A DNA stretch of 63,890 nt, counting the filler, from Octopus bimaculoides (lineage: Eukaryota), in the NCBI RefSeq assembly GCF_001194135.2. It is 5 parts of 5 records of this genome, joined end to end, with 100 filler letters (N's around TTAATTAATTAA, not from the genome) between each part and the next. Parts side by side here need not be neighbours in the genome. Positions count along the whole stretch, not along the records: positions 1 to 28,395 come from NC_069008.1; 4 more parts are not named here. One strand, 5' to 3'. The notes under the pieces are model-generated. The model did not search any database. It saw only the letters and a list, made by a program, of their open reading frames with translations, and was not told the DNA's origin. The translations under genes were made by a program, and so were the position numbers. Position 1 is the first letter of the stretch. Each line of letters opens with the position of its first letter. Shown here piece after piece: positions 2,824 to 26,499 of the stretch.

Positions 2824-3419
2824 GTAAGTCCAGTCGAAACAATGGAAGCATGATAATTCACCACCTTCAAAGAAGGCTCGTGTCCAACCCTCAGCAGGCA
2901 AGGTGTTGCTCACAATCTTTTGGGACCAGCGTAGAGTAGTGGTGACGGATTTTCTGGCAAAGGGCACCACAATTAACGAGGCATATTATGCTTCTCTGCC
3001 GCAGAAATTGTGGGACGCCATCAAAGCAGAGAGGGCTCCCATGATGACCAAAAGAGTCCGACTCATCCAAGACAACGCCCCAGTTTACAATGCTCATTTT
3101 GCCCAGATGAAAATACACTCCTGCGGTTATGAAATCCTTCCTCATCCCCCTTACTCTCCAGATCTGCCACCCACTGACTTCCACCTCCTTCCAACCATGA
3201 AGTCTTTTTTGAAGGGAAAGCACTTTTGGGATGACGATGAACTTATTTCCGAGGTAATGGCTTTGTTCCAGATGCAACCTACCGACTTCTACAGACGAGG
3301 TCTTCACAGCTGCATAAAGCTAATGAAGATGTGGCTATGTAGAGAACGACTAATAATTATGCCAAGTTTCGTTTATCCCAGTCCTCGGGAAGTGGATTAG
3401 GGGTAATCTTTAATGAACA

Positions 3420-6532: not shown

Positions 6533-6953
6533 TACACCTCAGAAACTCTGCCTCAGACTTGGAGGTTCAATTATTCTACTGAGAAACTTGGAATCTTTTC
6601 GGCTTTGCAACGGCACCCGGTTGGTTGTAACCCAATTGTTGGATGACGTTATCAAGGCTAAAACCATAACGGCTGCTGACACTGTTTTCATTTCTCGAAT
6701 ACCACTAATTCCAACTGACTGTGTATTCCCAGTGAAAAGAGTACAGTTTCTCGTACGTCTAAGCTTTGTCATGACCATCAACAAAGTCCAGGGGCAGTCA
6801 CTCAAAATGGTTGGGCTGGACCTCAGCACTCCATGTTTTTTTACAAGGGCAGCTGTATGTAGGCTGTTCCAGAGTTGGAAACTCGGCCAATCTATTTTAC
6901 TACATTTCCGGAGGAATGACAAAGAATGTGGTTTACAAGGCAACCCTCCAATA
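6533..6953 (+). mobile_element. Helitron RepHel PIF1-helicase C-terminal fragment
   Basis: IILLRNL..LCNGTRLVV..RIPLIPTD..KRVQF.VRLSFVMTINKVQGQSL..VGLDLSTPCF, then frameshifted QLYVGCSRV..KNVVYK: PIF1/Helitron helicase motifs V-VI. Confidence 0.85.
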
Positions 6954-8693
6954 GCTATTTCCATGGAGTTGAAAGCCCTTTAAGGTTAGTCCTTTCTGTG
7001 ATTACTTACTTCTCCGATTAGGTTACTGTTACTCTTCCAAAACTGCCTTACTTTGAAACAGACCATTTTTGATTTTTATTGGATAGCCTTCCACTTGCCC
7101 CAGGTAATCTCACATCAATTTAACACGTAGGTTCATATAGATTGCCTTCCGAGATAAAATTGATTTGCAAAGAACATGCCTTATGTTATTTTATTGCACA
7201 TTGTGTTATTTCACCCCGGAATTTCAAGTCTTTTTGTGTCAGTTTTTGAAAGAAGGATTTTTGCGCCTTTATTGAGTAGCAGTTTCTGTCTGCCTGTCCA
7301 TCGAGTGATTAAAACTTCCATTTATATTTTTATTCGAAGCTAATGTTACTTATCCCGTAGTTCTTACCACTACGCCACTGAAAATCGAAATAAAATACGT
7401 AAGGCAACAGTCGTCAAAGGCAAAAGCCAAAGAACTGTTTATTGCTTAAATATCACTTGCAATATTCACTTTGGAGATAAAACAGCGTTCAGTCTGACGT
7501 ATAGGTGTCAACATGAGGTATGTACTATGGAAGAGTACATCGTGCTTATCCTAATGTGAAAAGTGTTTGAGTGTAAAAAGTTTAAGGTTAATCATGATGT
7601 CCGATTCCACTGGAAGTTGTATATATTGTGGGCTGAACAGCTTTCCTTCATTTTATTGGCCTCATGACAATTTTGTATAGGTTCACTGGGTTAAGATACA
7701 CTATCACTCAATTTTAGAAGAAACAGTCAACAGTTTTAACGTCTCGGGGATCTTTAATTCCCTAACCAAAAGTAACAACCCCATACAATCATCAAACATC
7801 TCCGCAACTTAACACCGTCCAATGGACGGTGGGGGGGAGTTTGCTAGTATGTGTGCGTGTGTTTGTGTGTGTGTAGTGGTTCATACAGGCATAGCGTAGA
7901 TTCGATCCTCGATCGCCAAATTTCACTTAACAGTTCAACAGCACTTTTCTCACGGTGAAACAATAGTTTTTCTGTAAGTGACTGCAGTTACATTTGCCAG
8001 ATGCCTTCGCTAAGCAGAATAATGTCTTTGCCGCTTGACCCTTCTAACCTCTTCTAGGTCACTAAAAGCTAGAATAGAGATAACAGACCGCCAACGAAAT
8101 CTATTGTTTTCAATGATATGTCTATCCTTCTGGCTGGTTTTGGATAGTTATAAAAACAAGAACTCCGAAAGCCAAAGTCAGTTAGTGAGAACCGAGTCTG
8201 GCTGAACAAAACGCCGTTTCTAAAGGAAAAGGGACAACTATGGTAACTAACCAACGAAGCAGTTGTTTCGTCTCACCACTCTCACTTTCTTTTCTCTGTA
8301 ACATTACCATATCTCTCTATATATACTACTATGAGATCGTGTACACACATACCGGCCGAAATTAACTCTTTTTGCCTCGCATGCTTTTCCATTTACTAGT
8401 TATACATACCAACCCATCGCGGTTTTGGATAGATACAAAGTAACGGTAAATAAATATCTCTTTACAACTTCAATCACTGTTCTTCTTCCATCTTACAAAT
8501 GGCAAGCAACGAATATCATTGCCGTTACATATATATATACAACGAGTTTCTTCCAATTTCCGTCTACCAAATCCACTCACAAGGCTTTGGTCGGCCTGAG
8601 GCTAGTAGAAGACACTTGATCAAGGTGCCATGCAGTGCGACTGAACCTGGAACCATGTGGTTGGGAAGGAAGCGTCTTACCACACAGCCACAC

Positions 8694-9043: not shown

Positions 9044-9094
9044 AATATTTATAATAAAAATAACAACATCAGAGTTTAATATTTATGGAAACAT

Positions 9095-12000
9095 TTATTT
9101 GTCATAATGAAAGAAAGCAAAAGATTGACGTCCTGGAATAATTCCAAAAACCATGAAAGAATTTTCTGAAATATTAAAACCAAGAACTTCGTAAACTTCA
9201 TTATCGTCACACCTGAGGAGTAAATATTTTTGATTATCTTCAGATGTCAGGATTTCAATATCTTCAGTGGTTTGCAATTCAATATGTCCAGGTATTTGGT
9301 AAATATTGTTTTTTCTATCTGTTATATAAACATATTCACTAATTGCAATTAGATGAGCTTTGTCAATGTTATATTCTTGTCCCAGATGGTTTCCTTTTAG
9401 CCTTATCCTCCTGACCAATGACTTTTTCCTGAACCATTCGACAAAAGTGGCATAACACCAATTATCCATAGTCTCTTCCCACCTCACAACAACAACATCA
9501 CCAAGAGATGTGACTCCTACATCAACCACCAACGCTTCTCCCTCTAGTTTTCTAAATATCTTCGTCTTTCCACGACACACTTCATCTTTACATTTACCAT
9601 CTTTCATATCAACCACATCCACATAATAACAGTCGTAGGCATCGGGGTCTTTGCAAAAGTAATAAATGTTGTTGTTGTAGTTTTTTCTTGTGTAGTTCTT
9701 GTCTCTCTCATCTTGAGTTATGTCTCTCATATAATGACCACCACAAACGAGTTGATTGTCGTTGTATTTATAAATTGTGTTGTAATATTTCTCAGTTTTG
9801 ATGGCTTTTAAACAATAGAGATCTCTGTTGAAAGCCATCATTTCTTTACCAAAGGTAACTATGAAACATTCATCTGTCCACTGACAAATACCTAGTGGTT
9901 GTTGTTGTTTAGGAAATTGCTTATGCTGAAGTATGTCACCTGTTATTGTGCCAATTAATGTAACACTTTCTCGAAACATTAACACGCTGACGTTATCATT
10001 CAACTTAATTAGTTTGCTGTTTTGGTCACTAATGTTAAGATAATCATAATTAACAGGTTCATAGAAGGTAGGAATGGAAAGAGGGACCATTGCTGTTCTA
10101 TGTGGCATTCTCCTCACTGATATTTCATCAATTCCTGACATACTATCTGCAATATAATTCCAACATCTCACCTTTAATCCACCTTTACCAATTATTTCAC
10201 CTGGTTTACTTCTTTCTTCTCCATTGTATTTCAGTTTATTAACTAATTCATTGCTGAATATTTCCTTGTTCATCTGATTTATAATGGAAGGGAAATGCAG
10301 ACCAGAATCAAGGTTTAATAGTGTCAAAGATTCCAAAATGTTCACTTGATCACCATCAAGCTTTATGCAATGACATTCGATCAAGTTAATATGTACACAC
10401 CAGTAAATATTTCTCACTTTTCTCCATATCACACCATAAGGTACTTGACATTCCCAAACTTTGCATTTCTCCAAATCTTTTCCATTCAGTTGAAATATTT
10501 CTTGTCTGTTAGGAACTGTGGCCATTATGTCTCTTTCTCTTGTAAAACACACACCACCAACTAAACTTGCAACGTTTCTATAACATAGCAACTTCCCGTC
10601 TTCTTCAAATATTTTAATATTTCCATTATTGGCTTTTTCACACACAACTGTCTTTCCTTCATCAGAGATGTCAATATCTTTTACTTGAACAGTGCAGTTG
10701 TCTGTTTGTAAACGACAAACAGAGAATTTCTCCCGATTCAGCATAAATGAACCTTCAACATACAATTCATTAAATCTCATCTTATGGGCCCCAACAAACC
10801 TTGATCCTTTACAATTTATACTGGAGAAATCCACTACTTCTTTATAAATTCTTTTATTTAAAAATATTCTGCTGTATTCCCCAGTTTGTGTCAAACACAC
10901 AATCTTATCATATTCAGTTAAACCAAAATATTTCTCCCACTCACCATAGATGTACAAGTAACTTTCATCAATTGTCATCATGTTAAAATAATCCTCATAG
11001 TACCCCATGTAGTGTCTAACTGAATGTAAACATTGACCATCACTGTTGAAGAAAATGATAAATCTTTTGTTTAAGACAATGATGTCATCATCAGCAGTAA
11101 CTGCAATATCCTGGATGTCATTCATATAAATTCTACCATTTTCTTTGTATCTTGATAATAAGGTATTAGGTATGTTTATTCTTCTTATTGCATTCACCGT
11201 CGAATGTATTTCATCAATATCAATGAAATACAAACTACGATCGTCTACCCATCTACTACATACCAGTTGACTGTTTGATAGAGAAGCGATATATTTATAT
11301 TTATTTTTCGTATGGTAAATTACCAACGACAATGGAAATTCCAATTTTAATGTCCACAGTTGGTATTTCTTAACATGAGGACCCAAAGTTGTAATAACTA
11401 TTGTGTCTGATTGCCATCGAAACATCATCATTAAGGGAAAAGCATTAAATTTGATAGAGTCCAGAAGTTCACCATCAAATGTGAATATTTTGATGTTTCT
11501 ATTCATCCCATCGCCAACCACAATCACGTTATTTTCAGTAATAACTAAACAGCAAGTCAGCACTAACAGAGTCTCTCCCGGAAGACGAATATGTCTGCCT
11601 TTATCAGAAACTGTCAGATTCTGTAGGTATAATGTAGAAGACAACATTTCACTGACGCAAATGTTTCTGGAAAATACATCTACCAGGTCGATATAAATAT
11701 TAAGTTGATTATTTGTAACGAGATCATTAACCCACAAATTATGATTGTTTATAGCAAACATACGACAGTTGTCTATCAGATAAACAAACATTTCATCAAT
11801 AGATCCACCATTGAGATTAGAGGGACATTTCACCTGGGACAGTAAAACACTGGGGACCATCTTAATACAATAACGACGTTGATGACCAAGGTGCACTAAG
11901 CAAGATTCTGTTTGGGACACTGAAACTTTGAAAGGTATCTCAATACTATGAAGACGACGACCAATATCTATTCTAGTATTGTACTGAAATGCTTTTCCCC

Positions 12001-14503
12001 TAGTAACAATTAATAGCTTTTGTGTTTTCTTGTCTATAAATAATGATTTCACTACAAAAGGGATATTAATTCTATGAATTATTGCAACTTGATTATGATA
12101 ATTGATGGCTAAAATATCTAAATGTGATGGTTTATCACAATAACAAACAATTTCACCTTCACCCATCTTACACACCCGTACATAAGGCTGCCTTAATGAT
12201 ACGCTTCTCACTGTCTTTGATAGGTTTCCAATGACCCTTAATTGTTTCTGTAGGGGTAATGTGACACCTATTTGATGAGAATCCCATCGACATATATCCG
12301 TAGCTGGAGACGGCAGAGATAATCTCGACACAATGTCTCCTTCATTAGAAATGTATAACAAGCAATCATGGTTGATGTCGGACACCACCAACTGTCCATT
12401 ATCCAGATTACATATTTCGCCAATGACAAGTTTTTTGTCATTCTCCTTTTCTTTGAGTCGTAGATTTAGATTTCTGATATAAGGATTTTTCAGGTGTAAA
12501 CAACAGCCAGACGACCGGTCCTGATACTTGTAAAGAAGGACCCTGTTGAGTTGAGTGTCCGGTAGATAAACAGTCCCTTGGAAAACAGCAATGTGAGGGT
12601 GAACAGGGAAAGGCAGTTGCCACTGCCATTTCATTTCTCCATATATATCATAACATATCAGAATAGAGTCTCTCTTGAACAGAAGATAAAAATAAACATT
12701 ATCAGAGTAGATGTGATGGGGGTAGCCATAGAATGGAAGGTATTTTTGAAAAAGTTCTTCACCACATGTGGAATAAAATACTAGTTTATGTTTGCTTCCA
12801 TCTACGACTACAAAATTAATTGGAGTTGCAGCAATGGTGACATTAGAATGTCCCAGAGAAATTCTTTCAATAATGTCAACTTTATCTTCGTTGATCAATA
12901 GGATATGGATCTCATTTTTGTTTTCAGTGGTGGTCACAGCTAAACACTTATTTGATACAATATGACATATTTTAGTGTAATTAGTGTGGACCTTTATTAA
13001 AGGGCCTTCGGTTAATTCAGGACAGGTGATATACTGAAGTCTGTTCATTTCAGGATAAAATACCAGGAATTTGTTTGTGTTTATTCTACAATAGAAAGAA
13101 GGAAGCTCAAGGAAAGTTAAATCATTTTGGCTAATTATTTCCCCAGTCTCAGTGAATAATATAGTTTTCTTATTCCTGTAGATGATTAATATAGAAGATG
13201 TAGACATGGGTAGAATATTTGTAATGTTGTTGCTATCCTGAATATAAATATAGTCTTTCAAACTGGGGGTAGGTAGCTGGTGGTTGCATGACAGTTTGGG
13301 CCAAAAGTCTTTATTTGTTTCAATGGCATGTGGTTTGCCAAAATAATCTGTTACCAAAATGGCATCTGTACCAACAGAAATAGAACGGCAGTTCCTGCCA
13401 ATGTCACTCTGTATCACACCACCTGTAGCTGAAATTCTATAGATAATATGTCCCTGGAGGACATAGAAATGTTTTTGGGAGAAAGTGATTTCAGCTGCTA
13501 AATCCAGAGAATGGATCTCTACCTCAAATAACTGATGGCCATCCAGTTCATAACAGGTAACTATGTTACTATTGGAAAATGATATTAATAACTTAGCCCT
13601 TTGGCCTACAGCAATAGCTGCAGGTATTTCTTTGGTAATGAATTGCTTTGTAATTCTATTATGAAGCCAGTCTACAAAGTATATTGTTCTACTGAACATT
13701 TCCACTCCTACAAGTGAAAAATGCTCTAAGTAAGATACCTTATACAATGCTATTGGGAGTCTTTGTGTCTTAAAACTGAAGGGGTTGATAATAAGTATTA
13801 TGCGTCTAAAAGGGAGGGTTGCTAACACTGTGTCTAGGGCAATCCTGGTAAAATCAGTAACAGGAGAAGGGCAATGAACATCATTTCTGTCACCATCTCT
13901 TGTCATACAAAATATTGTCATACAATGGTGGGAATATGTTATTATTCCCCCTTGTATGACAACAATATTGGATATCGTGTAGTTGACAAATTCATCGCCA
14001 GATTCATCAATGTTTGTTTCTCTGGTCACAACTGGACAAAGAGGTCGAAATTTGTTTGTTATGTTTGGTGGTTCAATGGTCTTGTAGTTGTATGGGTTAC
14101 AGGTGACATAAATATCAAAAAGTCTTTGTTGAAACCAATCAAGATTTTGGTGAACAAAATCGTTATGTTGTTTTGTAAATTGATGAAATATTAGCATTTT
14201 ACATTTGATATTATGCAAAATACTAGATCCATCTAAACCCATAGACTCAAAGTGATTGCATTTATCCTTTACATAATCTATAAACGTACTGATGTGGTCT
14301 GTTTTTATTATTGTTAGATAACACGTTGCAATATGAAGGAAAATTGGTAATATAGATATTTCTTGTTCTTCAGTTTTCCTTGGGTTTTGTGTATGTCTTA
14401 TTTGGGGAAGAATTTGTGTAGTTTTCTGATAAATTGCTGTTGTATCACAGACTGTGGCATGAATGAGAGCCATCATTTTGTTTTCTTCATTAATCTTCTC
14501 CAT
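9095..14503 (-). CDS. Single-coding-exon 1802-aa protein: ~170-aa helical N-terminus plus about six tandem NHL-like (6-bladed) beta-propeller modules; uncharacterised
   Basis: 5.4-kb stop-free ORF in very AT-rich DNA. ATG at 14503 in context AAAATGG with an in-frame TAA at 14519-14521; stop TAA at 9095-9097. A two-blade motif recurs at residues ~177, 427, 694, 982, 1274 and 1496 (e.g. IGEICNLDNGQLVVSDINHDCLLYISNEGDIVSRLSLPSPATDICRWDSHQIGVTLP; VKDIDISDEGKTVVCEKANNGNIKIFEEDGKLL). No obvious signal peptide or TM segment. Confidence 0.9.
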   Translation of the reverse strand: MEKINEENKMMALIHATVCDTTAIYQKTTQILPQIRHTQNPRKTEEQEISILPIFLHIATCYLTIIKTDHISTFIDYVKDKCNHFESMGLDGSSILHNIKCKMLIFHQFTKQHNDFVHQNLDWFQQRLFDIYVTCNPYNYKTIEPPNITNKFRPLCPVVTRETNIDESGDEFVNYTISNIVVIQGGIITYSHHCMTIFCMTRDGDRNDVHCPSPVTDFTRIALDTVLATLPFRRIILIINPFSFKTQRLPIALYKVSYLEHFSLVGVEMFSRTIYFVDWLHNRITKQFITKEIPAAIAVGQRAKLLISFSNSNIVTCYELDGHQLFEVEIHSLDLAAEITFSQKHFYVLQGHIIYRISATGGVIQSDIGRNCRSISVGTDAILVTDYFGKPHAIETNKDFWPKLSCNHQLPTPSLKDYIYIQDSNNITNILPMSTSSILIIYRNKKTILFTETGEIISQNDLTFLELPSFYCRINTNKFLVFYPEMNRLQYITCPELTEGPLIKVHTNYTKICHIVSNKCLAVTTTENKNEIHILLINEDKVDIIERISLGHSNVTIAATPINFVVVDGSKHKLVFYSTCGEELFQKYLPFYGYPHHIYSDNVYFYLLFKRDSILICYDIYGEMKWQWQLPFPVHPHIAVFQGTVYLPDTQLNRVLLYKYQDRSSGCCLHLKNPYIRNLNLRLKEKENDKKLVIGEICNLDNGQLVVSDINHDCLLYISNEGDIVSRLSLPSPATDICRWDSHQIGVTLPLQKQLRVIGNLSKTVRSVSLRQPYVRVCKMGEGEIVCYCDKPSHLDILAINYHNQVAIIHRINIPFVVKSLFIDKKTQKLLIVTRGKAFQYNTRIDIGRRLHSIEIPFKVSVSQTESCLVHLGHQRRYCIKMVPSVLLSQVKCPSNLNGGSIDEMFVYLIDNCRMFAINNHNLWVNDLVTNNQLNIYIDLVDVFSRNICVSEMLSSTLYLQNLTVSDKGRHIRLPGETLLVLTCCLVITENNVIVVGDGMNRNIKIFTFDGELLDSIKFNAFPLMMMFRWQSDTIVITTLGPHVKKYQLWTLKLEFPLSLVIYHTKNKYKYIASLSNSQLVCSRWVDDRSLYFIDIDEIHSTVNAIRRINIPNTLLSRYKENGRIYMNDIQDIAVTADDDIIVLNKRFIIFFNSDGQCLHSVRHYMGYYEDYFNMMTIDESYLYIYGEWEKYFGLTEYDKIVCLTQTGEYSRIFLNKRIYKEVVDFSSINCKGSRFVGAHKMRFNELYVEGSFMLNREKFSVCRLQTDNCTVQVKDIDISDEGKTVVCEKANNGNIKIFEEDGKLLCYRNVASLVGGVCFTRERDIMATVPNRQEIFQLNGKDLEKCKVWECQVPYGVIWRKVRNIYWCVHINLIECHCIKLDGDQVNILESLTLLNLDSGLHFPSIINQMNKEIFSNELVNKLKYNGEERSKPGEIIGKGGLKVRCWNYIADSMSGIDEISVRRMPHRTAMVPLSIPTFYEPVNYDYLNISDQNSKLIKLNDNVSVLMFRESVTLIGTITGDILQHKQFPKQQQPLGICQWTDECFIVTFGKEMMAFNRDLYCLKAIKTEKYYNTIYKYNDNQLVCGGHYMRDITQDERDKNYTRKNYNNNIYYFCKDPDAYDCYYVDVVDMKDGKCKDEVCRGKTKIFRKLEGEALVVDVGVTSLGDVVVVRWEETMDNWCYATFVEWFRKKSLVRRIRLKGNHLGQEYNIDKAHLIAISEYVYITDRKNNIYQIPGHIELQTTEDIEILTSEDNQKYLLLRCDDNEVYEVLGFNISENSFMVFGIIPGRQSFAFFHYDK

Positions 14504-14617
14504 TTTATGAATATAGAATTATCTCTTTCTATTAAATATACTTTCTTCTCAGGAGTTTGTTGTCGTCCTTCAGAATAAAATTTCTCTCTTCACAATTCAA
14601 TGATTTTTATGCCAAAG

Positions 14618-14646
14618 CTGAAATAAAATGGAAACTTTATTAGTTC
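14618..14646 (-). promoter_or_regulatory. 3' splice acceptor of a 5'-UTR intron of the 1802-aa gene
   Basis: Minus strand reads gaaCTAATaaagtttccattttatttCAG|ctttgg: branch-point-like CTAAT, pyrimidine tract and AG about 115 nt upstream of the ATG. Confidence 0.65.
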
Positions 14647-15810
14647 TGTGAAAAGTTCTTGATAAGATAGTTTTTACTTCAATGTTTCAAACAATTTAGA
14701 GGAAAATACATATTTGATTAACTCTTTTGTTACAAACCTGGCTGAAACCGGCTCTGGCTCTGAGTACAAATGTCTTGTTTTCATAAGTTTTGAATTAAAA
14801 TCTTCCACCAAACTTCAGTCACAATTTATGTTCCTAACACTAGCTGAATGATAACTAAGTTATTTTATTAAATTCTTTGTTATATTTAAAGTAATTGAAA
14901 GAAACACAGAGCATCTCAAAATAAATACATGTATGAAAGGGTTAAGTTTACTAAACAAATTGTTTATTTTGCAGTTAAGAATACATTAAAACTATTTTCA
15001 ATAGCATAATCATTAGAAATAAAACTTGGAAGATGTAAGTACACTATTATATGTATTGACTGAATATAAGGAATGGTGAAAAGTTTTGTAGTAAGACAGA
15101 ATATAAGTATTACTAATGATTATATGTACTGGAAATGATGTGACTGTCATGGTTGGCTTGGTTTCCATCATATTTACCTAGATCAAGAGATATCAATAAA
15201 GCTGTAGATAAAACCTGACAAATGCTGTAAATCTCTGATTTTAATATAAGTCACAACATTGATAAACTCGGAAAGCTTATCAAAAGATTGGGTTTAATGT
15301 AATCCCACTGTCACACAGCACATTGAGAAGACCGTTATTATTTGTTCCTGCTTGAGATAATAAAGATTGGTACCAATGAGAAATATGTTTATGTGAAACA
15401 TATTTACGGTGGGTGAAGTGTGTTTTATTTTGTGTTAGGCAAGGAGATATAGCTGAGGTAGTGAGAGATCTGGGGTAATAAATATAATGAAAGGAGCTGA
15501 GTGCTGGGGAGAGACAAGCTGGTCTGCTGCTCCTGTCACTCGAAGGTGGTAGTGGTTCACTCCCTTGCTTGCAATATATCGAATGCAGGTTGCATTGCTA
15601 ACCAGCTAGAGGAGATGTCCCCTTGGGGTTAAAAATCACAGTAATGTCTGTTCCTACAGAACAACCACGTTGAGGTGGCAACAAACATTACTTATGTGTG
15701 TGTGTGTGTGTGTGTGCATGCATTTATGCACATAGGTATATGCATAAAATAGACATACAAACACATATTCACTCACCCATATATATGCATATACATACAT
15801 ATTTTTATAT

Positions 15811-16194
15811 GTTGTTGGCACTCCGTCGCTTACGACGCCGAGTGTTCCAGTTGATCCGATCAACGGAACAGCCTGCTCGTGAAATTAACGTGCAAGTGGC
15901 TGAGCACTCCACAGACGCGTGTACCCTTCACGTAGTCCTCGGGGATATTCAGCGTGACACAGTGTGACAAGGCTGACCCTTTGAATTAAAGGCACAACAG
16001 AAACAGGAAGTAACAGTGAGAGAAAGTTGTGGTGGAAGAGTACAGCAGGGTTCGCCACCATCCCCTGCCGGAGCCTCATGGAGCTTTAGGTGTTTTCGCT
16101 CAACAAACACTCACAACACCCGGTCTGGGAATTGAAACTGCGATCCTATGACCGCGAGTCCGCTGCCCTAACTACTGGGCCATTGTGCCTCCAC
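15811..16194 (-). mobile_element. tRNA-headed SINE, family C, full length
   Basis: Head on minus strand gtggaggcacaatggcccagtagttagggcagcggac..gtttcaattccc (A and B boxes); 14-bp TSD acatatttttatat (15797-15810 and 16195-16208). Confidence 0.85.
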
Positions 16195-16684: not shown

Positions 16685-17402
16685 AATATATTTGCCAACT
16701 AAATGTGTTGGTTCGATAGAGGATGATGTTACTGCTGTTTTTAGCCCCAGGAAGACATCTCCAGTTGGCTAACAGCACACTGCCTGTGTCTGATTAGTAT
16801 TTGTGAGGGGAGGTCATTGCTCCCATCTCTAACTTTACGTTATGTTGGCACTCCGTCGCTTACGAGGTCGAGGGTTCTAGTTGATCCGATCAACGGAACA
16901 GCCTGCTCGTGAAATTAACGTGCAAGTGGCTGAGCACTCCACAGACACGTGTACCCTTAACGTAGTTCTCGGGGATATTCAGCGTGACGCAGAGTGTGAC
17001 AAGGCTGACCCTTTGAATTACAGGCACAACAGAAACAGGCAGAAAGAGTGAGAGAAAGTTGTGGTGAAAGAGTACAGCAGGGTTCGTCACCATCCCCTGG
17101 CGGAGCCTCGGGGAGCTTTAGGTGTTTTCGCTCAATAAACACTCAACGAAACCGCGATCCTATGACCGTGAGTCTGCTGCTCTAACCACTGGGCCATTGC
17201 GCCTCCACAACCTTACGTTATACACAGAACAGATTTTGTATGTATCACATAAGGCGAGAGATGGGAGAAATGACCTGCCCACACAAATACTAATCAGACA
17301 CAGACAGCGTTTTGTTAGCCAACTGGAGATGTCTTCCTGGGGCTAAAAACAGCAGTAACATCATCCTCTATGGGACCACCACATTGAGTTGGCAAATATA
17401 TT
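16685..17402. mobile_element. Foldback/MITE-like element with ~146-bp inverted arms and a SINE inserted in its spacer
   Basis: 16685-16830 is the reverse complement of 17257-17402 (about 90% identical by eye). A diverged relative of the arm lies at ~15590-15655. Confidence 0.8.
16843..17208 (-). mobile_element. SINE family C
   Basis: Near-identical to 15811-16194; 12-bp TSD aac(t/c)ttacgtta (16831-16842 and 17209-17220). Confidence 0.85.
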
Positions 17403-17841: not shown

Positions 17842-19017
17842 TTCGCTCACAATCTATCATGTATTTTATCTCGTAGATAAATAATAAACTCTAGGCGTTA
17901 TACATGTATGTCTGTATGTTATGTATGCATATATATATAGATGTGTGTGTGTGTATATNNNNNNNNNNNNNNNNNNNNNNNNNNNNNNNNNNNNNNNNNN
18001 NNNNNNNNNNNNNNNNNNNNNNNNNNNNNNNNNNNNNNNNNNNNNNNNNNNNNNNNNNNNNNNNNNNNNNNNNNNNNNNNNNNNNNNNNNNNNNNNNNNN
18101 NNNNNNNNNNNNNNNNNNNNNNNNNNNNNNNNNNNNNNNNNNNNNNNNNNNNNNNNNNNNNNNNNNNNNNNNNNNNNNNNNNNNNNNNNNNNNNNNNNNN
18201 NNNNNNNNNNNNNNNNNNNNNNNNNNNNNNNNNNNNNNNNNNNNNNNNNNNNNNNNNNNNNNNNNNNNNNNNNNNNNNNNNNNNNNNNNNNNNTACCCAT
18301 ATACATGTATATGTGTCCCATATGAATATTTGTATTTGTCAGTGTGCTGGGTTCCCACGGCAGGTAAAAAGAGAAAAATACTTGGAAATCCGCATACACA
18401 TTCTCATATTTAAATCATCATCATCATCCAGTGTTCTAAATCCGGGTTTCGTCCCCGTTAACGGGGGTGGCTGGATCTACCTCAATGCCATAGCAACCGA
18501 GATAGGCAGGTGCAGCCCACCCCAACCTTTGGGCTGGTTGGGGCCCATTCTCCCTTGCTATCTTGAGGCTTTTTTGGAGCTGGATTTTCTACGGGGAGCA
18601 TGCCCTTACTTACCCCTAACCTCAGTTTCTAGACATGAGTGGTGCCGAGACCAAGGTTTCTATCACGATTTTTAAGAAATGTGGTGGAAAACTAGCACAA
18701 GAAGGCAGGGACACCACTCCCTGAGACCCCTTTCAGAGCCCCTCCTCCTACCTAAATGTACATGCATATGTTCATGTGTGTAGATGCATATGTATATCAA
18801 TACACATATAACATTTACACATATCTATAATATATTCAATGTGAGTGTGTGTCTGTGTGTATTGTATCTGCCTCCAGTCTAATTAAGCAACTGCTATAAT
18901 TAACAGTAATTAACATCCACATTCCAAGCTGGCATAGGTTGGATGGTTTGATTGAGGGTGCACCAGGCTCCAATCCGATCTGGCAGAGTTTCTACAGCTG
19001 AATGCCCTTCCTAACGC

Positions 19018-19058
<41 letters not shown>

Positions 19059-20164
19059 ATGACCACTAAGTGGACATTTAATGTGCTAGAAGAAGATCAC
19101 AAGTTGTCTCTACTAAGACCTAATAATTCTCTGAGATCTCAGATATTTTTTCTGAATCCGTCTGATTCTTTCAATGTGCTAGCTTCCTGGTAATAAATCG
19201 ATATTAATTAATATCTGATTTTTTACCCTATGTTTTAATTTGATTATATATATATATATATATTTGGAGTGGTGTTTTTCAAGTTGTGTGTGTGTAATAT
19301 GGTGAAATATCTAATACATATATGAACGAAAACTGTATGTGTATGTATGTATATCTATGTGGGTCTGTTTCTATGTATTTATGTATGTTTGTATGCATGC
19401 GAATGCATATATATANNNNNNNNNNNNNNNNNNNNNNNNNNNNNNNNNNNNNNNNNNNNNNNNNNNNNNNNNNNNNNNNNNNNNNNNNNNNNNNNNNNNN
19501 NNNNNNNNNNNNNNNNNNNNNNNNNNNNNNNNNNNNNNNNNNNNNNNNNNNNNNNNNNNNNNNNNNNNNNNNNNNNNNNNNNNNNNNNNNNNNNNNNNNN
19601 NNNNNNNNNNNNNNNNNNNNNNNNNNNNNNNNNNNNNNNNNNNNNNNNNNNNNNNNNNNNNNNNNNNNNNNNNNNNNNNNNNNNNNNNNNNNNNNNNNNN
19701 NNNNNNNNNNNNNNNNNNNNNNNNNNNNNNNNNNNNNNNNNNNNNNNNNNNNNNNNNNNNNNNNNNNNNNNNNNNNNNNNNNNNNNNNNNNNNNNNNNNN
19801 NNNNNNNNNNNNNNNNNNNNNNNNNNNNNNNNNNNNNNNNNNNNNNNNNNNNNNNNNNNNNNNNNNNNNNNNNNNNNNNNNNNNNNNNNNNNNNNNNNNN
19901 NNNNNNNNNNNNNNNNNNNNNNNNNNNNNNNNNNNNNNNNNNNNNNNNNNNNNNNNNNNNNNNNNNNNNNNNNNNNNNNNNNNNNNNNNNNNNNNNNNNN
20001 NNNNNNNNNNNNNNNNNNNNNNNNNNNNNNNNNNNNNNNNNNNNNNNNNNNNNNNNNNNNNNNNNNNNNNNNNNNNNNNNNNNNNNNNNNNNNNNNNNNN
20101 NNNNNNNNNNNNNNNNNNNNNNNNNNNNNNNNNNNNNNNNNNCATACAAAGCAAAATCGTGAAG

Positions 20165-22942: not shown

Positions 22943-23329
22943 GGTTAGACAATAATACAATGAGGCATGGGCTTCTATTTCAGAGTAAGAGAAAGTTGTG
23001 GTGGAAGAGTACAGCAGGGTTCGCCACCATCCCCTGCCAGAGCCTCGTGGAGCTTTAGGTGTTTTCGCTCAATAAACACTCGGACTGGGAATTGAAACCG
23101 CGAGTCCGCTGCCCTAACCACTGTGCTGTGTTTGTATGTTTCTGAATGCTTGTTTTTGTGTTGCTGTTCTTCTATGCCCTCGACGTTGTAAGCAACAGAG
23201 TGCCAACAACAAAACAAAAGACATGGACACATGCACATTACATTCAAATTTTACATGATGCTACATGGGTTAGACAATAATACAATGAGGCATGGGTTTC
23301 TATTTCAGGGGCCCTTCCTGGTGCTGCCA

Positions 23330-24664: not shown

Positions 24665-25061
<397 letters not shown>

Positions 25062-25064
<3 letters not shown>

Positions 25065-25646
25065 GTTATATGGCTTCTCTCCTGTATGAATACTTCTGTG
25101 TGTAATTAAGTGACTACGTTGACTGAAAGATTTACCACAGATATCACAGTGATATGGCTTCTCTCCCGTATGAATACGTTTGTGTTTAGTTACATCACTA
25201 TTGTTGGAGAAAGATTTACCACAGATATCACAGCTATATGGCTTCTCTCCCGTATGAATACGTTTGTGTTTAGTTAAGTTACTATTATAAGAGAAAGATT
25301 TACCACAGATATCACAGCGATATGGCTTCTCTCCTGTATGAGTACGTTTGTGAACAGTTAATGCACAACTTTCAGTGAATGATTTACCACAGATATCACA
25401 ACGATATGGCCTCTCTCCTTTGTGAATACATTTGTGTTTAGTTAAGTCACCATTGTGAGTGAAAGATTTACCACAGATAATACAGCGATACAGTTTCTTT
25501 CCTGCATGAATACGTTTATGAATAACTAGGTCATATTTTTGAGAGAAAGATTTTGTACAGACATCACAGTCATATGACAATTTTTGCACCTCTTTTATCA
25601 GGTCGTCATGTAAAATCAATTCTTTAAGTTTGTCAATCTTTTCCAT
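25062..25646 (-). CDS. C2H2 zinc-finger protein with six in-frame fingers (194 aa from ATG 25646), truncated by a frameshift
   Basis: Six CxxC-x12-HxxxH fingers with TGEKPY-type linkers (e.g. [28 protein letters not shown]). The ORF-track start at 25661 is TTG; the first ATG is at 25646 (MEKIDK), with an in-frame TAA at 25695-25697. Confidence 0.9.
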
Positions 25647-25916
25647 TATTCTTTTCTTCAAATCACAATGTATATTTCTTCTTGGTTTTTCTTCTTACAG
25701 TTTACTCTTATAAATGCTTCCACGTACGTAAATTTATTCAAGTTTAATCAATGCACAAACTCATCTTCTTGACATTCCAGTCACTGATGTACAGAAATTT
25801 TGCTACTAATCTCAGGTGACAGCAGATGTTTCATAGGAATTCAACCACAGATTTAGAGAAACAGTGTTGTATATCTGTTCTGTATAACAGTTTCCCTTAG
25901 TCATTGAGAATATCTT

Positions 25917-26139: not shown

Positions 26140-26499
26140 TTGTCACTTACGATGTCGAGGAGTCGATCCGATCAACGGAACAGCCTGTCCGGGAAATTAA
26201 CGTGCAAGTGGCTGAGCACTCCACAGACACGCGTACCCTTAACGTAGTTCTCGTGACACAGTGTGACAAGGCTGACCCTTTGAATTACAGGCACAACAGA
26301 AACAGGAAGAAAGAGAGAGAGAAAGCTGTGGTGGAAGAGTACAGCAGGGTTCGCCACCATCACCTGACGGAGCCTCCTGGAGCTTTAGGTTAGGTGTTTT
26401 CGCTTAATAAACACTCACAACGCCCAATCTGGGAATCGAAACCGTGATCCTATGACCACGAGTCCGCTACGCTAACCACTGGGCCATTGCGCCTCCACG
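26140..26499 (-). mobile_element. SINE family C
   Basis: Same core; TSD ttcacat(c/t)gtat (26128-26139 and 26500-26511). Confidence 0.85.

Follow-up and report, generated by a model that had tools for sequence, protein, structure and literature searches.

A single-exon octopus gene predicted to encode six tandem propellers of NHL type, and its octopod family

We examined positions 1-28395 (record NC_069008.1) of the window, by which we mean the whole stretch of DNA analysed: 63,890 nucleotides, filler included, joined from five parts of the Octopus bimaculoides genome (assembly GCF_001194135.2). As an initial annotation made from the sequence alone had reported, an intact open reading frame (ORF) of 1802 codons lies here amid decayed repeats, at 9095..14503 on the minus strand. 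It ends in a TAA stop (9095-9097), occupies one coding exon and is the sole genuine long ORF in these positions; the other long frames found in six-frame translation are spurious, because they are produced by runs of N (assembly gaps) at 1259-1766, 17959-18293 and 19416-20142, which also cause the low-GC dips in the composition profile. An exact look-up placed the ORF at about 13.71-13.73 Mb of the 18.6-Mb record CM046628.1 in assembly GCA_001194135.2, where a public gene call has exactly the same 1802-residue product and no Pfam family recorded. The predicted product has a mass of 209 kDa, an isoelectric point of 6.9 and 58 cysteines, many of which are invariant among the related proteins described below.

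An in-frame TAA upstream had been said to close the gene's one coding exon, and the window and five relatives bore this out: in all six loci examined the coding sequence was a single exon, with a stop in frame 6-7 codons ahead of the ATG. Collinearity between the window locus and that of the O. vulgaris relative P0001 begins about 950 nt upstream and extends 44 nt beyond the stop, similarity ending at 9051; within it lie the ATG, the in-frame stop ahead of it, the putative acceptor and the ATTAAA hexamer (Table 1). The upstream flank may be intron or promoter sequence of a duplicated or orthologous unit. At the locus of the more distant paralogue P0040, similarity to the window is confined to the coding sequence.

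A two-blade signature recurs six times along the protein, starting at residues 178, 428, 695, 984, 1275 and 1497, and four closing motifs start at residues 382 (ILVTDYFG), 645 (VYLPDTQLNRV), 948 (ICVSEMLSS) and 1725 (VYITDRKNN). The same sites had been listed in the initial annotation, those of the signature to within 1-2 residues. The six signature segments align on a common pattern, I..I..h..G.hVV.D.....I.IF...G.hh.......P..IC.W.....VTLP. When the protein was compared with itself by BLASTP no internal repeats were returned, and the module copies are therefore very old. The duplications had already been described as old, and a family member from Argonauta shares the full-length architecture at 38% identity to the window protein, which agrees with this. 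We built hidden Markov models (HMMs), each from one module's signature segment across 16 family members, and used 300 shuffled proteins as a control. These one-module HMMs matched other modules in register at 5-12 bits (module 1 to 3, 11.6 bits; 6 to 3, 10.7; 6 to 2, 7.1; 4 to 5, 6.5), against a best shuffled score of 2.7-5.1 bits, and hhalign comparison of module profile with module profile gave in-register matches at up to 91% probability. The recurrence of the signature is more than chance.

The structure was predicted with AlphaFold2 for two overlapping halves of the protein, each from a 24-row family alignment, and we grouped strands into blades by reading lists from the secondary-structure program DSSP by motif register, not from inspected coordinates. 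The predicted product is of cytosolic type: roughly the first 135 residues are helical, and a short conserved linker leads into six propeller modules of about 220-330 residues each (Table 1). Five all-beta domains were modelled confidently (predicted local distance difference test, pLDDT, 72-90) and one, module 5, poorly. DSSP gave 23-26 strands in modules 2 and 4 and about 21 or more in modules 1, 3 and 6, where the grouping is less clean. In module 2 the strand list reads as six four-stranded blades, with strand 414-420 taken as closing blade 6 and VYLPDTQLNRV at 645 as the B strand of that blade. Module 3 has a disordered insert at about 848-877, and its D-A and B-C loops L729-I736 and T747-L750 are invariant across the family; module 5 is highly conserved in sequence (VKDxDxSxxGxxVVxEKANxG...GGVC). 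Foldseek against the PDB returned only multi-propeller proteins, namely intraflagellar transport complex A (IFT-A) subunits, LRP4/LRP2, DDB1, Utp21 and doublet-microtubule WD proteins (E = 1e-21 to 1e-12 over 700-1000 columns, 7-11% identity, template modelling (TM) scores of 0.1-0.25). Low TM-scores are expected when domain orientations differ. The earlier reading of about six tandem propeller modules thus agrees with both the predicted secondary structure and Foldseek, module 5 being the poorly modelled one.

Table 1 Features of the window gene and its predicted protein (positions are those of the window)
Feature	Position	Strand	Remarks
5' untranslated part of coding exon	14504..14617	-	Holds in-frame TAA 14519-14521, six codons before ATG
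Putative 3' splice acceptor ccattttatttcag (ttttatttcag, ends at 14618)	14618..14631	-	Conserved in O. vulgaris P0001 locus
ATTAAA poly(A)-signal-like hexamer	9075..9080	-	15 nt past stop; common to P0001 locus
Upstream flank collinear with O. vulgaris P0001 locus	14942..15454	-	77-86% identity
Helical head, residues 1-134	14102..14503	-	AlphaFold2 helices, low pLDDT; 31% identity even among close paralogues
Linker, residues 135-176	13976..14101	-	Disordered in AlphaFold2; family-invariant N135, I142, K150, F151, S167
Predicted propeller module 1, residues 177-400	13304..13975	-	pLDDT ~85 (177-395), ~21 strands; signature 178, ILVTDYFG 382
Predicted propeller module 2, residues 401-665	12509..13303	-	pLDDT ~77 (414-659); 77% identity within cluster
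Predicted propeller module 3, residues 666-965	11609..12508	-	pLDDT ~72 (694-925); most conserved module; net charge +8
Predicted propeller module 4, residues 966-1252	10748..11608	-	pLDDT ~80 (970-1250); six four-stranded blades by strand list
Module 5, residues 1253-1470	10094..10747	-	Strands at 1252-1467; NHL propeller match over ~3.5 blades
Predicted propeller module 6, residues 1471-1802	9098..10093	-	pLDDT ~85, ~6-7 blades plus inserts; net charge -9; VYITDRKNN 1725

No signal peptide, convincing transmembrane segment or conserved hydrophobic segment was found in the window protein; a hydrophobic helix at residues 48-66 (Kyte-Doolittle 1.77) falls where the family is least conserved. 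The protein lacks RING, B-box and coiled coil, and Pfam scans of the whole protein and of slices found neither RING and B-box, as the initial annotation had stated, nor any other domain. The head has no Pfam match. We considered whether it could be a remnant of a TRIM coiled coil, which is unsupported (residues 1-175 match a TRIM-like N-terminus at an hhalign probability of 0.2%).

We compared the modules with known propellers, bearing in mind that, in TRIM-NHL regulators, the NHL propeller is known as one C-terminal module that binds RNA or protein. Taken alone, the window protein fails the standard NHL test, and the link to NHL runs through an intermediate family. Pfam found no significant domain in the whole window protein, in 16 relatives or in seven slices of the protein, and the family member P0048 scored 18.5 bits on the Pfam NHL model, under its gathering score of 20 bits. 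An exhaustive HMMER search of 1.84 billion representative sequences, made with a profile covering residues 400-1480, gave as nearest animal matches outside the family P0066 (Acanthosepion pharaonis, 656 aa, E = 5e-6), P0068, P0069 and P0070, with E values from 5e-6 to 8e-4. By Pfam, P0066 contains RING, B-box and NHL, P0068 and P0070 contain B-box and NHL, and P0069 matches nothing; the NHL score passes the cut-off in P0066 and P0068. A profile of the P0066 family matched the solved NHL domains of TRIM3 (E = 2.5e-21), TRIM2 (1.2e-19), Thin (3.9e-19), TRIM71 (3.5e-18) and Brat (6.5e-13), and its N-terminus matched the RING, B-box and coiled-coil structures of TRIM28. A word-indexed homologue search with this TRIM-like profile returned almost nothing.

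The propeller of the P0066 family opens with IVVSD....LKKF.FDG..L....L.SPPHGIC.W....VVVTLP...QI, which is the two-blade signature of the modules. All six modules aligned to this TRIM-NHL propeller in register by hhalign, over 137-222 columns and with scores at least 7 standard deviations above those of 25 column-shuffled profiles (mean 15, standard deviation 3, maximum 28). The strongest alignments were those of module 3 (98.5% probability, score 108, E = 1.9e-15) and module 4 (98.5%, score 108, E = 2.9e-15; the best full-length match, at 222/280 columns), followed by module 6 (95.2%, score 63), module 5 (93.9%, score 55), module 1 (57.8%, score 38, 171 columns) and module 2 (46.4%, score 36). 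Individual slices had been expected to hit NHL or similar propellers: Pfam gave nothing significant on the seven slices, and profile-profile alignment placed all six modules above shuffles. We conclude from these sequence comparisons that all six modules derive from a TRIM-NHL-type propeller. The label NHL-like, given earlier, stands in the sense of homology to a bona fide TRIM-NHL propeller, with Pfam NHL itself below threshold.

Word-indexed and exhaustive searches together recovered a family of about 40 clusters at 90% identity, from Octopus vulgaris, O. sinensis and O. bimaculoides, together with two proteins from Argonauta hians (1913 and 1925 residues). Word-indexed searches with the protein and with the family profile gave Octopus matches only, and no comparable protein was found from squids, cuttlefish or other animals in the libraries searched, including the 1.84 billion representatives. 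The suggestion that the protein is lineage-specific can accordingly be narrowed to octopods. Family members are about 1650-1900 residues long, and the Octopus members are 44-75% identical to the window protein over 96-100% of its length. All of their records are named "uncharacterized" or "hypothetical" and our literature search found no paper on the family; we found no description of a chain of six NHL propellers without an E3 module, the gene models being public and unannotated.

In O. vulgaris, one 29.2-Mb record carries at least 25 of the clusters; in O. sinensis, most copies map to one 15.1-Mb record; and the window gene shares the 18.6-Mb O. bimaculoides record with P0037, P0040 and P0051. 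In the orthologue comparison, three sub-lineages gave identities of 92%, 94% and 86% when O. bimaculoides proteins were set against those of O. vulgaris or O. sinensis, two of these sub-lineages being on large chromosomes; the best match of the window protein was only 72% identical. The upstream flank of the P0072/P0042 pair is about 90% identical. A few members are conserved one-to-one between Octopus species, and most belong to the small-chromosome cluster, which evolves by birth-and-death and probably also by gene conversion. Two deep branches, P0042/P0071/P0072 and P0048/P0074/P0075, contain single-copy genes situated on large chromosomes, with 92-99% identity across the three Octopus species, unlike the small-chromosome cluster with its turnover; these branches may carry the ancestral function.

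Ratios of nonsynonymous to synonymous substitution rates (dN/dS) were calculated by the Nei-Gojobori method. For the window gene these were 0.55 against P0001 (dN 0.169, dS 0.310), 0.48 against P0040 (0.350, 0.726) and 0.45 against P0031 (0.361, 0.802), and for orthologues they were 0.40 for P0040/P0031 (0.071, 0.177) and 0.39 for P0072/P0042 (0.039, 0.099). Since all of these ratios lie at 0.39-0.55, the reading frame is under purifying selection, though weak. Selection on the frame had earlier been proposed from its intactness, and the window gene's ratios of 0.45-0.55 are clearly below 1; against P0001, dN is below dS by about 7 standard errors (our estimate). Synonymous divergence from P0001 is mosaic, being at the orthologue level (0.12-0.20) at codons 500-850 and 0.95 at codons 200-350, an eightfold variation along the gene (listed at window positions 12100-13900 vs 11950-13000, minus strand). 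In orthologue pairs of the family dS is uniform at 0.1-0.25. The mosaic pattern suggests exchange among paralogues by gene conversion or recombination.

Conservation within the cluster is uneven: 74-79% for modules 2, 3 and 5, 59-65% for modules 1, 4 and 6, and 31% for the head. In module 4 the loops inferred to form the top face had an entropy of 1.61 bits, compared with 0.55 for loops of the opposite face and 0.85 for strands. Modules 1 and 3 show the reverse, their top face being better conserved than the opposite one. We regard a hypervariable inferred face of propeller 4 as a lead.

Several other features surround the gene. A C2H2 zinc-finger array lies about 10 kb upstream of the 1802-codon ORF on the same strand (24666-25661, minus); it repeats every 84 nt and comprises about 11 units. 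Its open part (25062-25661) encodes 199 aa with six fingers (Pfam E = 1e-47), and the array is frameshifted and pseudogene-like because the later fingers lie in the other two frames with stops. A zinc-finger-like gene that matches the window array lies some 7 kb from the paralogue P0040 in O. bimaculoides (L003 22300-23319, minus), the match being to this locus rather than to the O. vulgaris one, and the O. vulgaris gene model P0006 has about 6 C2H2 fingers (residues 30-190) in frame with a complete family member from about residue 270, which is possibly an annotation artefact. From the P0040 locus and the P0006 fusion, the family seems to be embedded in a zinc-finger cluster.

A mariner-type transposase remnant, a 165-aa fragment, is present at 2903-3400 on the plus strand (Transposase_1, 35.8 bits; DDE_3 weak), and an ORF at 6588-6983 (plus) resembles the C-terminus of a Pif1/Helitron-type helicase (Pif1_2B, 17.5 bits, below cut-off). 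Copies resembling short interspersed nuclear elements (SINEs), of about 300-370 nt and 80-95% identical to copies in O. vulgaris and in O. bimaculoides paralogue loci, were found at 15779-16153, 16843-17210, 26142-26459 and 22982-23103; two of them form a direct repeat (15804-15966 / 16834-16996, 92%). A telomere-like (TTAGGG)n repeat at 1852-1898 (Tandem Repeats Finder unit TAGGGT, 7.8 copies) lies about 85 nt from the gap at 1259-1766. Either an interstitial telomeric repeat or an assembly join could explain it.

Taken as a whole, these results show an intact octopod gene under selection whose predicted product combines a helical head with six NHL-derived propellers, and we think it probable that the gene is functional and that the protein serves as a RING-less multivalent binder. 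NHL propellers bind RNA (as in Brat and LIN-41) or proteins on one face, and the window protein would accordingly present a ligand-binding face on each propeller. The conserved propellers 2, 3 and 5 may hold a partner common to the family, and the variable head and propellers 1, 4 and 6, chiefly the loops of one face of propeller 4, may set the specificity of each paralogue. To what was known from the initial annotation this adds at least 40 paralogue clusters, the poorly modelled module 5 and a cephalopod TRIM-NHL parent family.

A number of observations weigh against this explanation. The best Pfam NHL score (PF01436, in clan CL0186 of six-bladed propellers) of any slice was 11.2 bits (E = 0.41, module 4; cut-off 20), and phmmer and hmmsearch with the protein and the family profile against the PDB gave only the NHL domains of TRIM2, TRIM3 and TRIM71, at insignificant E values of 0.2-1. 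Modules 1 and 2 reach hhalign probabilities of only 46-58%. The AlphaFold2 model of module 5 is poor (pLDDT < 50), and a closed six-bladed propeller in each module is a prediction, the fold having been searched on multi-module halves. The family records found, including those from cluster look-ups, are only genome-derived gene models or unnamed database entries, and nothing ties the family to immunity. As for propeller 4, the top face was defined as B-C plus D-A loops and the opposite face as A-B plus C-D loops, with strands A-D taken in DSSP order by propeller convention. The dN/dS of its top loops was 1.53 (window vs P0001), 0.80, 0.87 and 0.91, compared with 0.03-0.60 for the opposite face and 0.35-0.51 for the remaining protein. 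The sample is small (50-65 codons), and the ratio of 1.53, over 65 codons, is not significantly greater than 1. It should be noted that module 4 was singled out after its raised dN/dS had been seen.

The alternative that we take most seriously, while considering it unlikely, is that this is a real multi-propeller protein with a structural or housekeeping role as a cytoskeletal, ciliary or trafficking scaffold, its fast evolution reflecting relaxed constraint after duplication. The best Foldseek matches (IFT-A, DDB1 and doublet-microtubule proteins) would fit such a role, as would a family dN/dS of about 0.4-0.55 with no region significantly above 1 and the presence of conserved single-copy members on large chromosomes. 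However, those matches share the generic propeller fold only, sequence homology favours NHL over WD40, variation is concentrated on one inferred face of one propeller, and a tandem cluster of tens of diverging copies would be unusual for a housekeeping scaffold. It is far less likely that the propellers belong to another class (WD40, YWTD/LDLR-B, SGL or Sema) with NHL-like motifs arising from convergent blade chemistry. Besides the sub-threshold Pfam NHL scores, this idea could draw on a bacterial delta-60/DUF5122 propeller which also scores (E = 2.8e-10 over 12 short stretches) and on one family fragment named "Sema domain-containing" in UniRef; it is opposed by the alignment of six modules in register on one TRIM-NHL profile that itself matches solved NHL domains at E = 1e-21, by the P0048 score and by the fact that all animal matches outside the family with any Pfam match (P0066, P0067, P0068 and P0070) match NHL. 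Pfam found no WD40 in the window protein, and weak WD-type matches (E > 0.004) in a few relatives. Just as doubtful is the idea of an adhesion or receptor protein that is secreted or anchored in the membrane, with a signal peptide on an unseen upstream exon or residues 48-66 acting as an anchor. The NHL propellers of teneurin and the YWTD propellers of LRP are extracellular examples, LRP4 and LRP2 ectodomains are among the fold matches, and the many invariant cysteines and the hydrophobic helix could be read in this way; against it, the upstream stop closes the frame in the window gene and five relatives, family conservation is lowest around the helix, extracellular modules such as EGF and LDL-A were not found, and the parent TRIM-NHL family is cytosolic.

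An origin of the ORF from a transposable element or endogenous virus, multi-copy because selfish, is more improbable still. The family is indeed multi-copy and single-exon, the gene lies amid transposon remnants (mariner at 2903-3400 and the SINE-like repeats), and one O. vulgaris gene model includes a DUF4371 (hAT-type) stretch. But Pfam finds no transposase, integrase, reverse transcriptase or capsid domain in the window protein, the copies are 44-75% identical rather than near-identical, with dN/dS of 0.4-0.55, orthologues are kept at 86-94% identity with a P0072/P0042 upstream flank that is also conserved, and similarity to P0040 stops within the coding sequence. We rejected a transposable-element origin on the absence of mobile-element domains and of flanking terminal inverted or long terminal repeats, and a viral origin on a Foldseek search of a viral structure library, which gave generic propellers only; neither finding that the initial annotation had named as able to overturn its reading, a transposon or a viral protein, was thus made. 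Least credible of all is a non-functional open frame, either a recent pseudogene or an annotation artefact. The neighbourhood is decayed, with a frameshifted zinc-finger array and transposon remnants, whereas 5.4 kb has stayed open at a dS of 0.31 from the nearest relative, with dN (0.169) significantly below dS (0.310), and the start, upstream stop, acceptor and poly(A) hexamer are kept in the O. vulgaris locus.

If the product is a multivalent NHL-derived binder, its most likely use would be to recognise a rapidly changing target, for instance viral or transposon RNA or protein, a role that would fit the clustering, turnover and focused variability of the family and that we put forward tentatively, as possible rather than probable. 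A bolder and still less probable proposal is that octopods made a new class of intracellular recognition protein by multiplying the NHL propeller of a TRIM-NHL ancestor sixfold, dropping the ligase module and then expanding the product into an array of clustered genes that recombine and lie next to C2H2 zinc-finger genes. Within such an array the conserved propeller core would signal or anchor, and the variable head and the hypervariable face of propeller 4 would read fast-changing targets. If that were true, the octopod array would be an invertebrate analogue of diversified sensors of TRIM5 or NLR type. The innate immunity and genome defence of these animals are poorly understood, and a family that is octopod-restricted, large, clustered and fast-evolving, with variability on one propeller face, is a concrete candidate for a lineage-specific recognition system. 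It is also a clean example of domain multiplication pushing a family past the reach of standard domain models.

Several propellers on one chain are also seen in DDB1 (three WD40-like propellers), IFT-A, Utp21, EML-type microtubule proteins and LRP4/LRP2. These show no sequence relationship to the window protein, and their propellers are of a different class, in most cases WD40 with seven blades or extracellular YWTD separated by EGF spacers. In other animals, TRIM families that have expanded in tandem within one lineage serve innate immunity, as with primate TRIM5 and fish finTRIM. The octopod family resembles these in its TRIM derivation, clustered paralogues, raised dN/dS and loop variability in a C-terminal recognition domain, a likeness that we offer only as a lead; unlike the octopod proteins, in which NHL is sixfold and RING has been lost, TRIM5 and finTRIM have B30.2/SPRY and have kept RING. 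The closest known systems are the TRIM-NHL proteins (TRIM2, TRIM3, TRIM32/Thin, TRIM71/LIN-41, Brat and Mei-P26) and the unnamed cephalopod family with RING, B-box, coiled coil and NHL (P0066, P0068-P0070). With these the window protein shares six modules each homologous in register to their C-terminal six-bladed propeller, the blade motif hhVxDxxNxxhxhF..G, the segment P.GIC.W....VTLP and a cytosolic-type sequence. Unlike them, it has six propellers rather than one, lacks RING, B-box and coiled coil and with them the E3 ligase module, carries in their place a helical head of no relation to them and has modules too diverged for the Pfam NHL model, and it is encoded by a single-exon gene of a clustered, octopod-only family.

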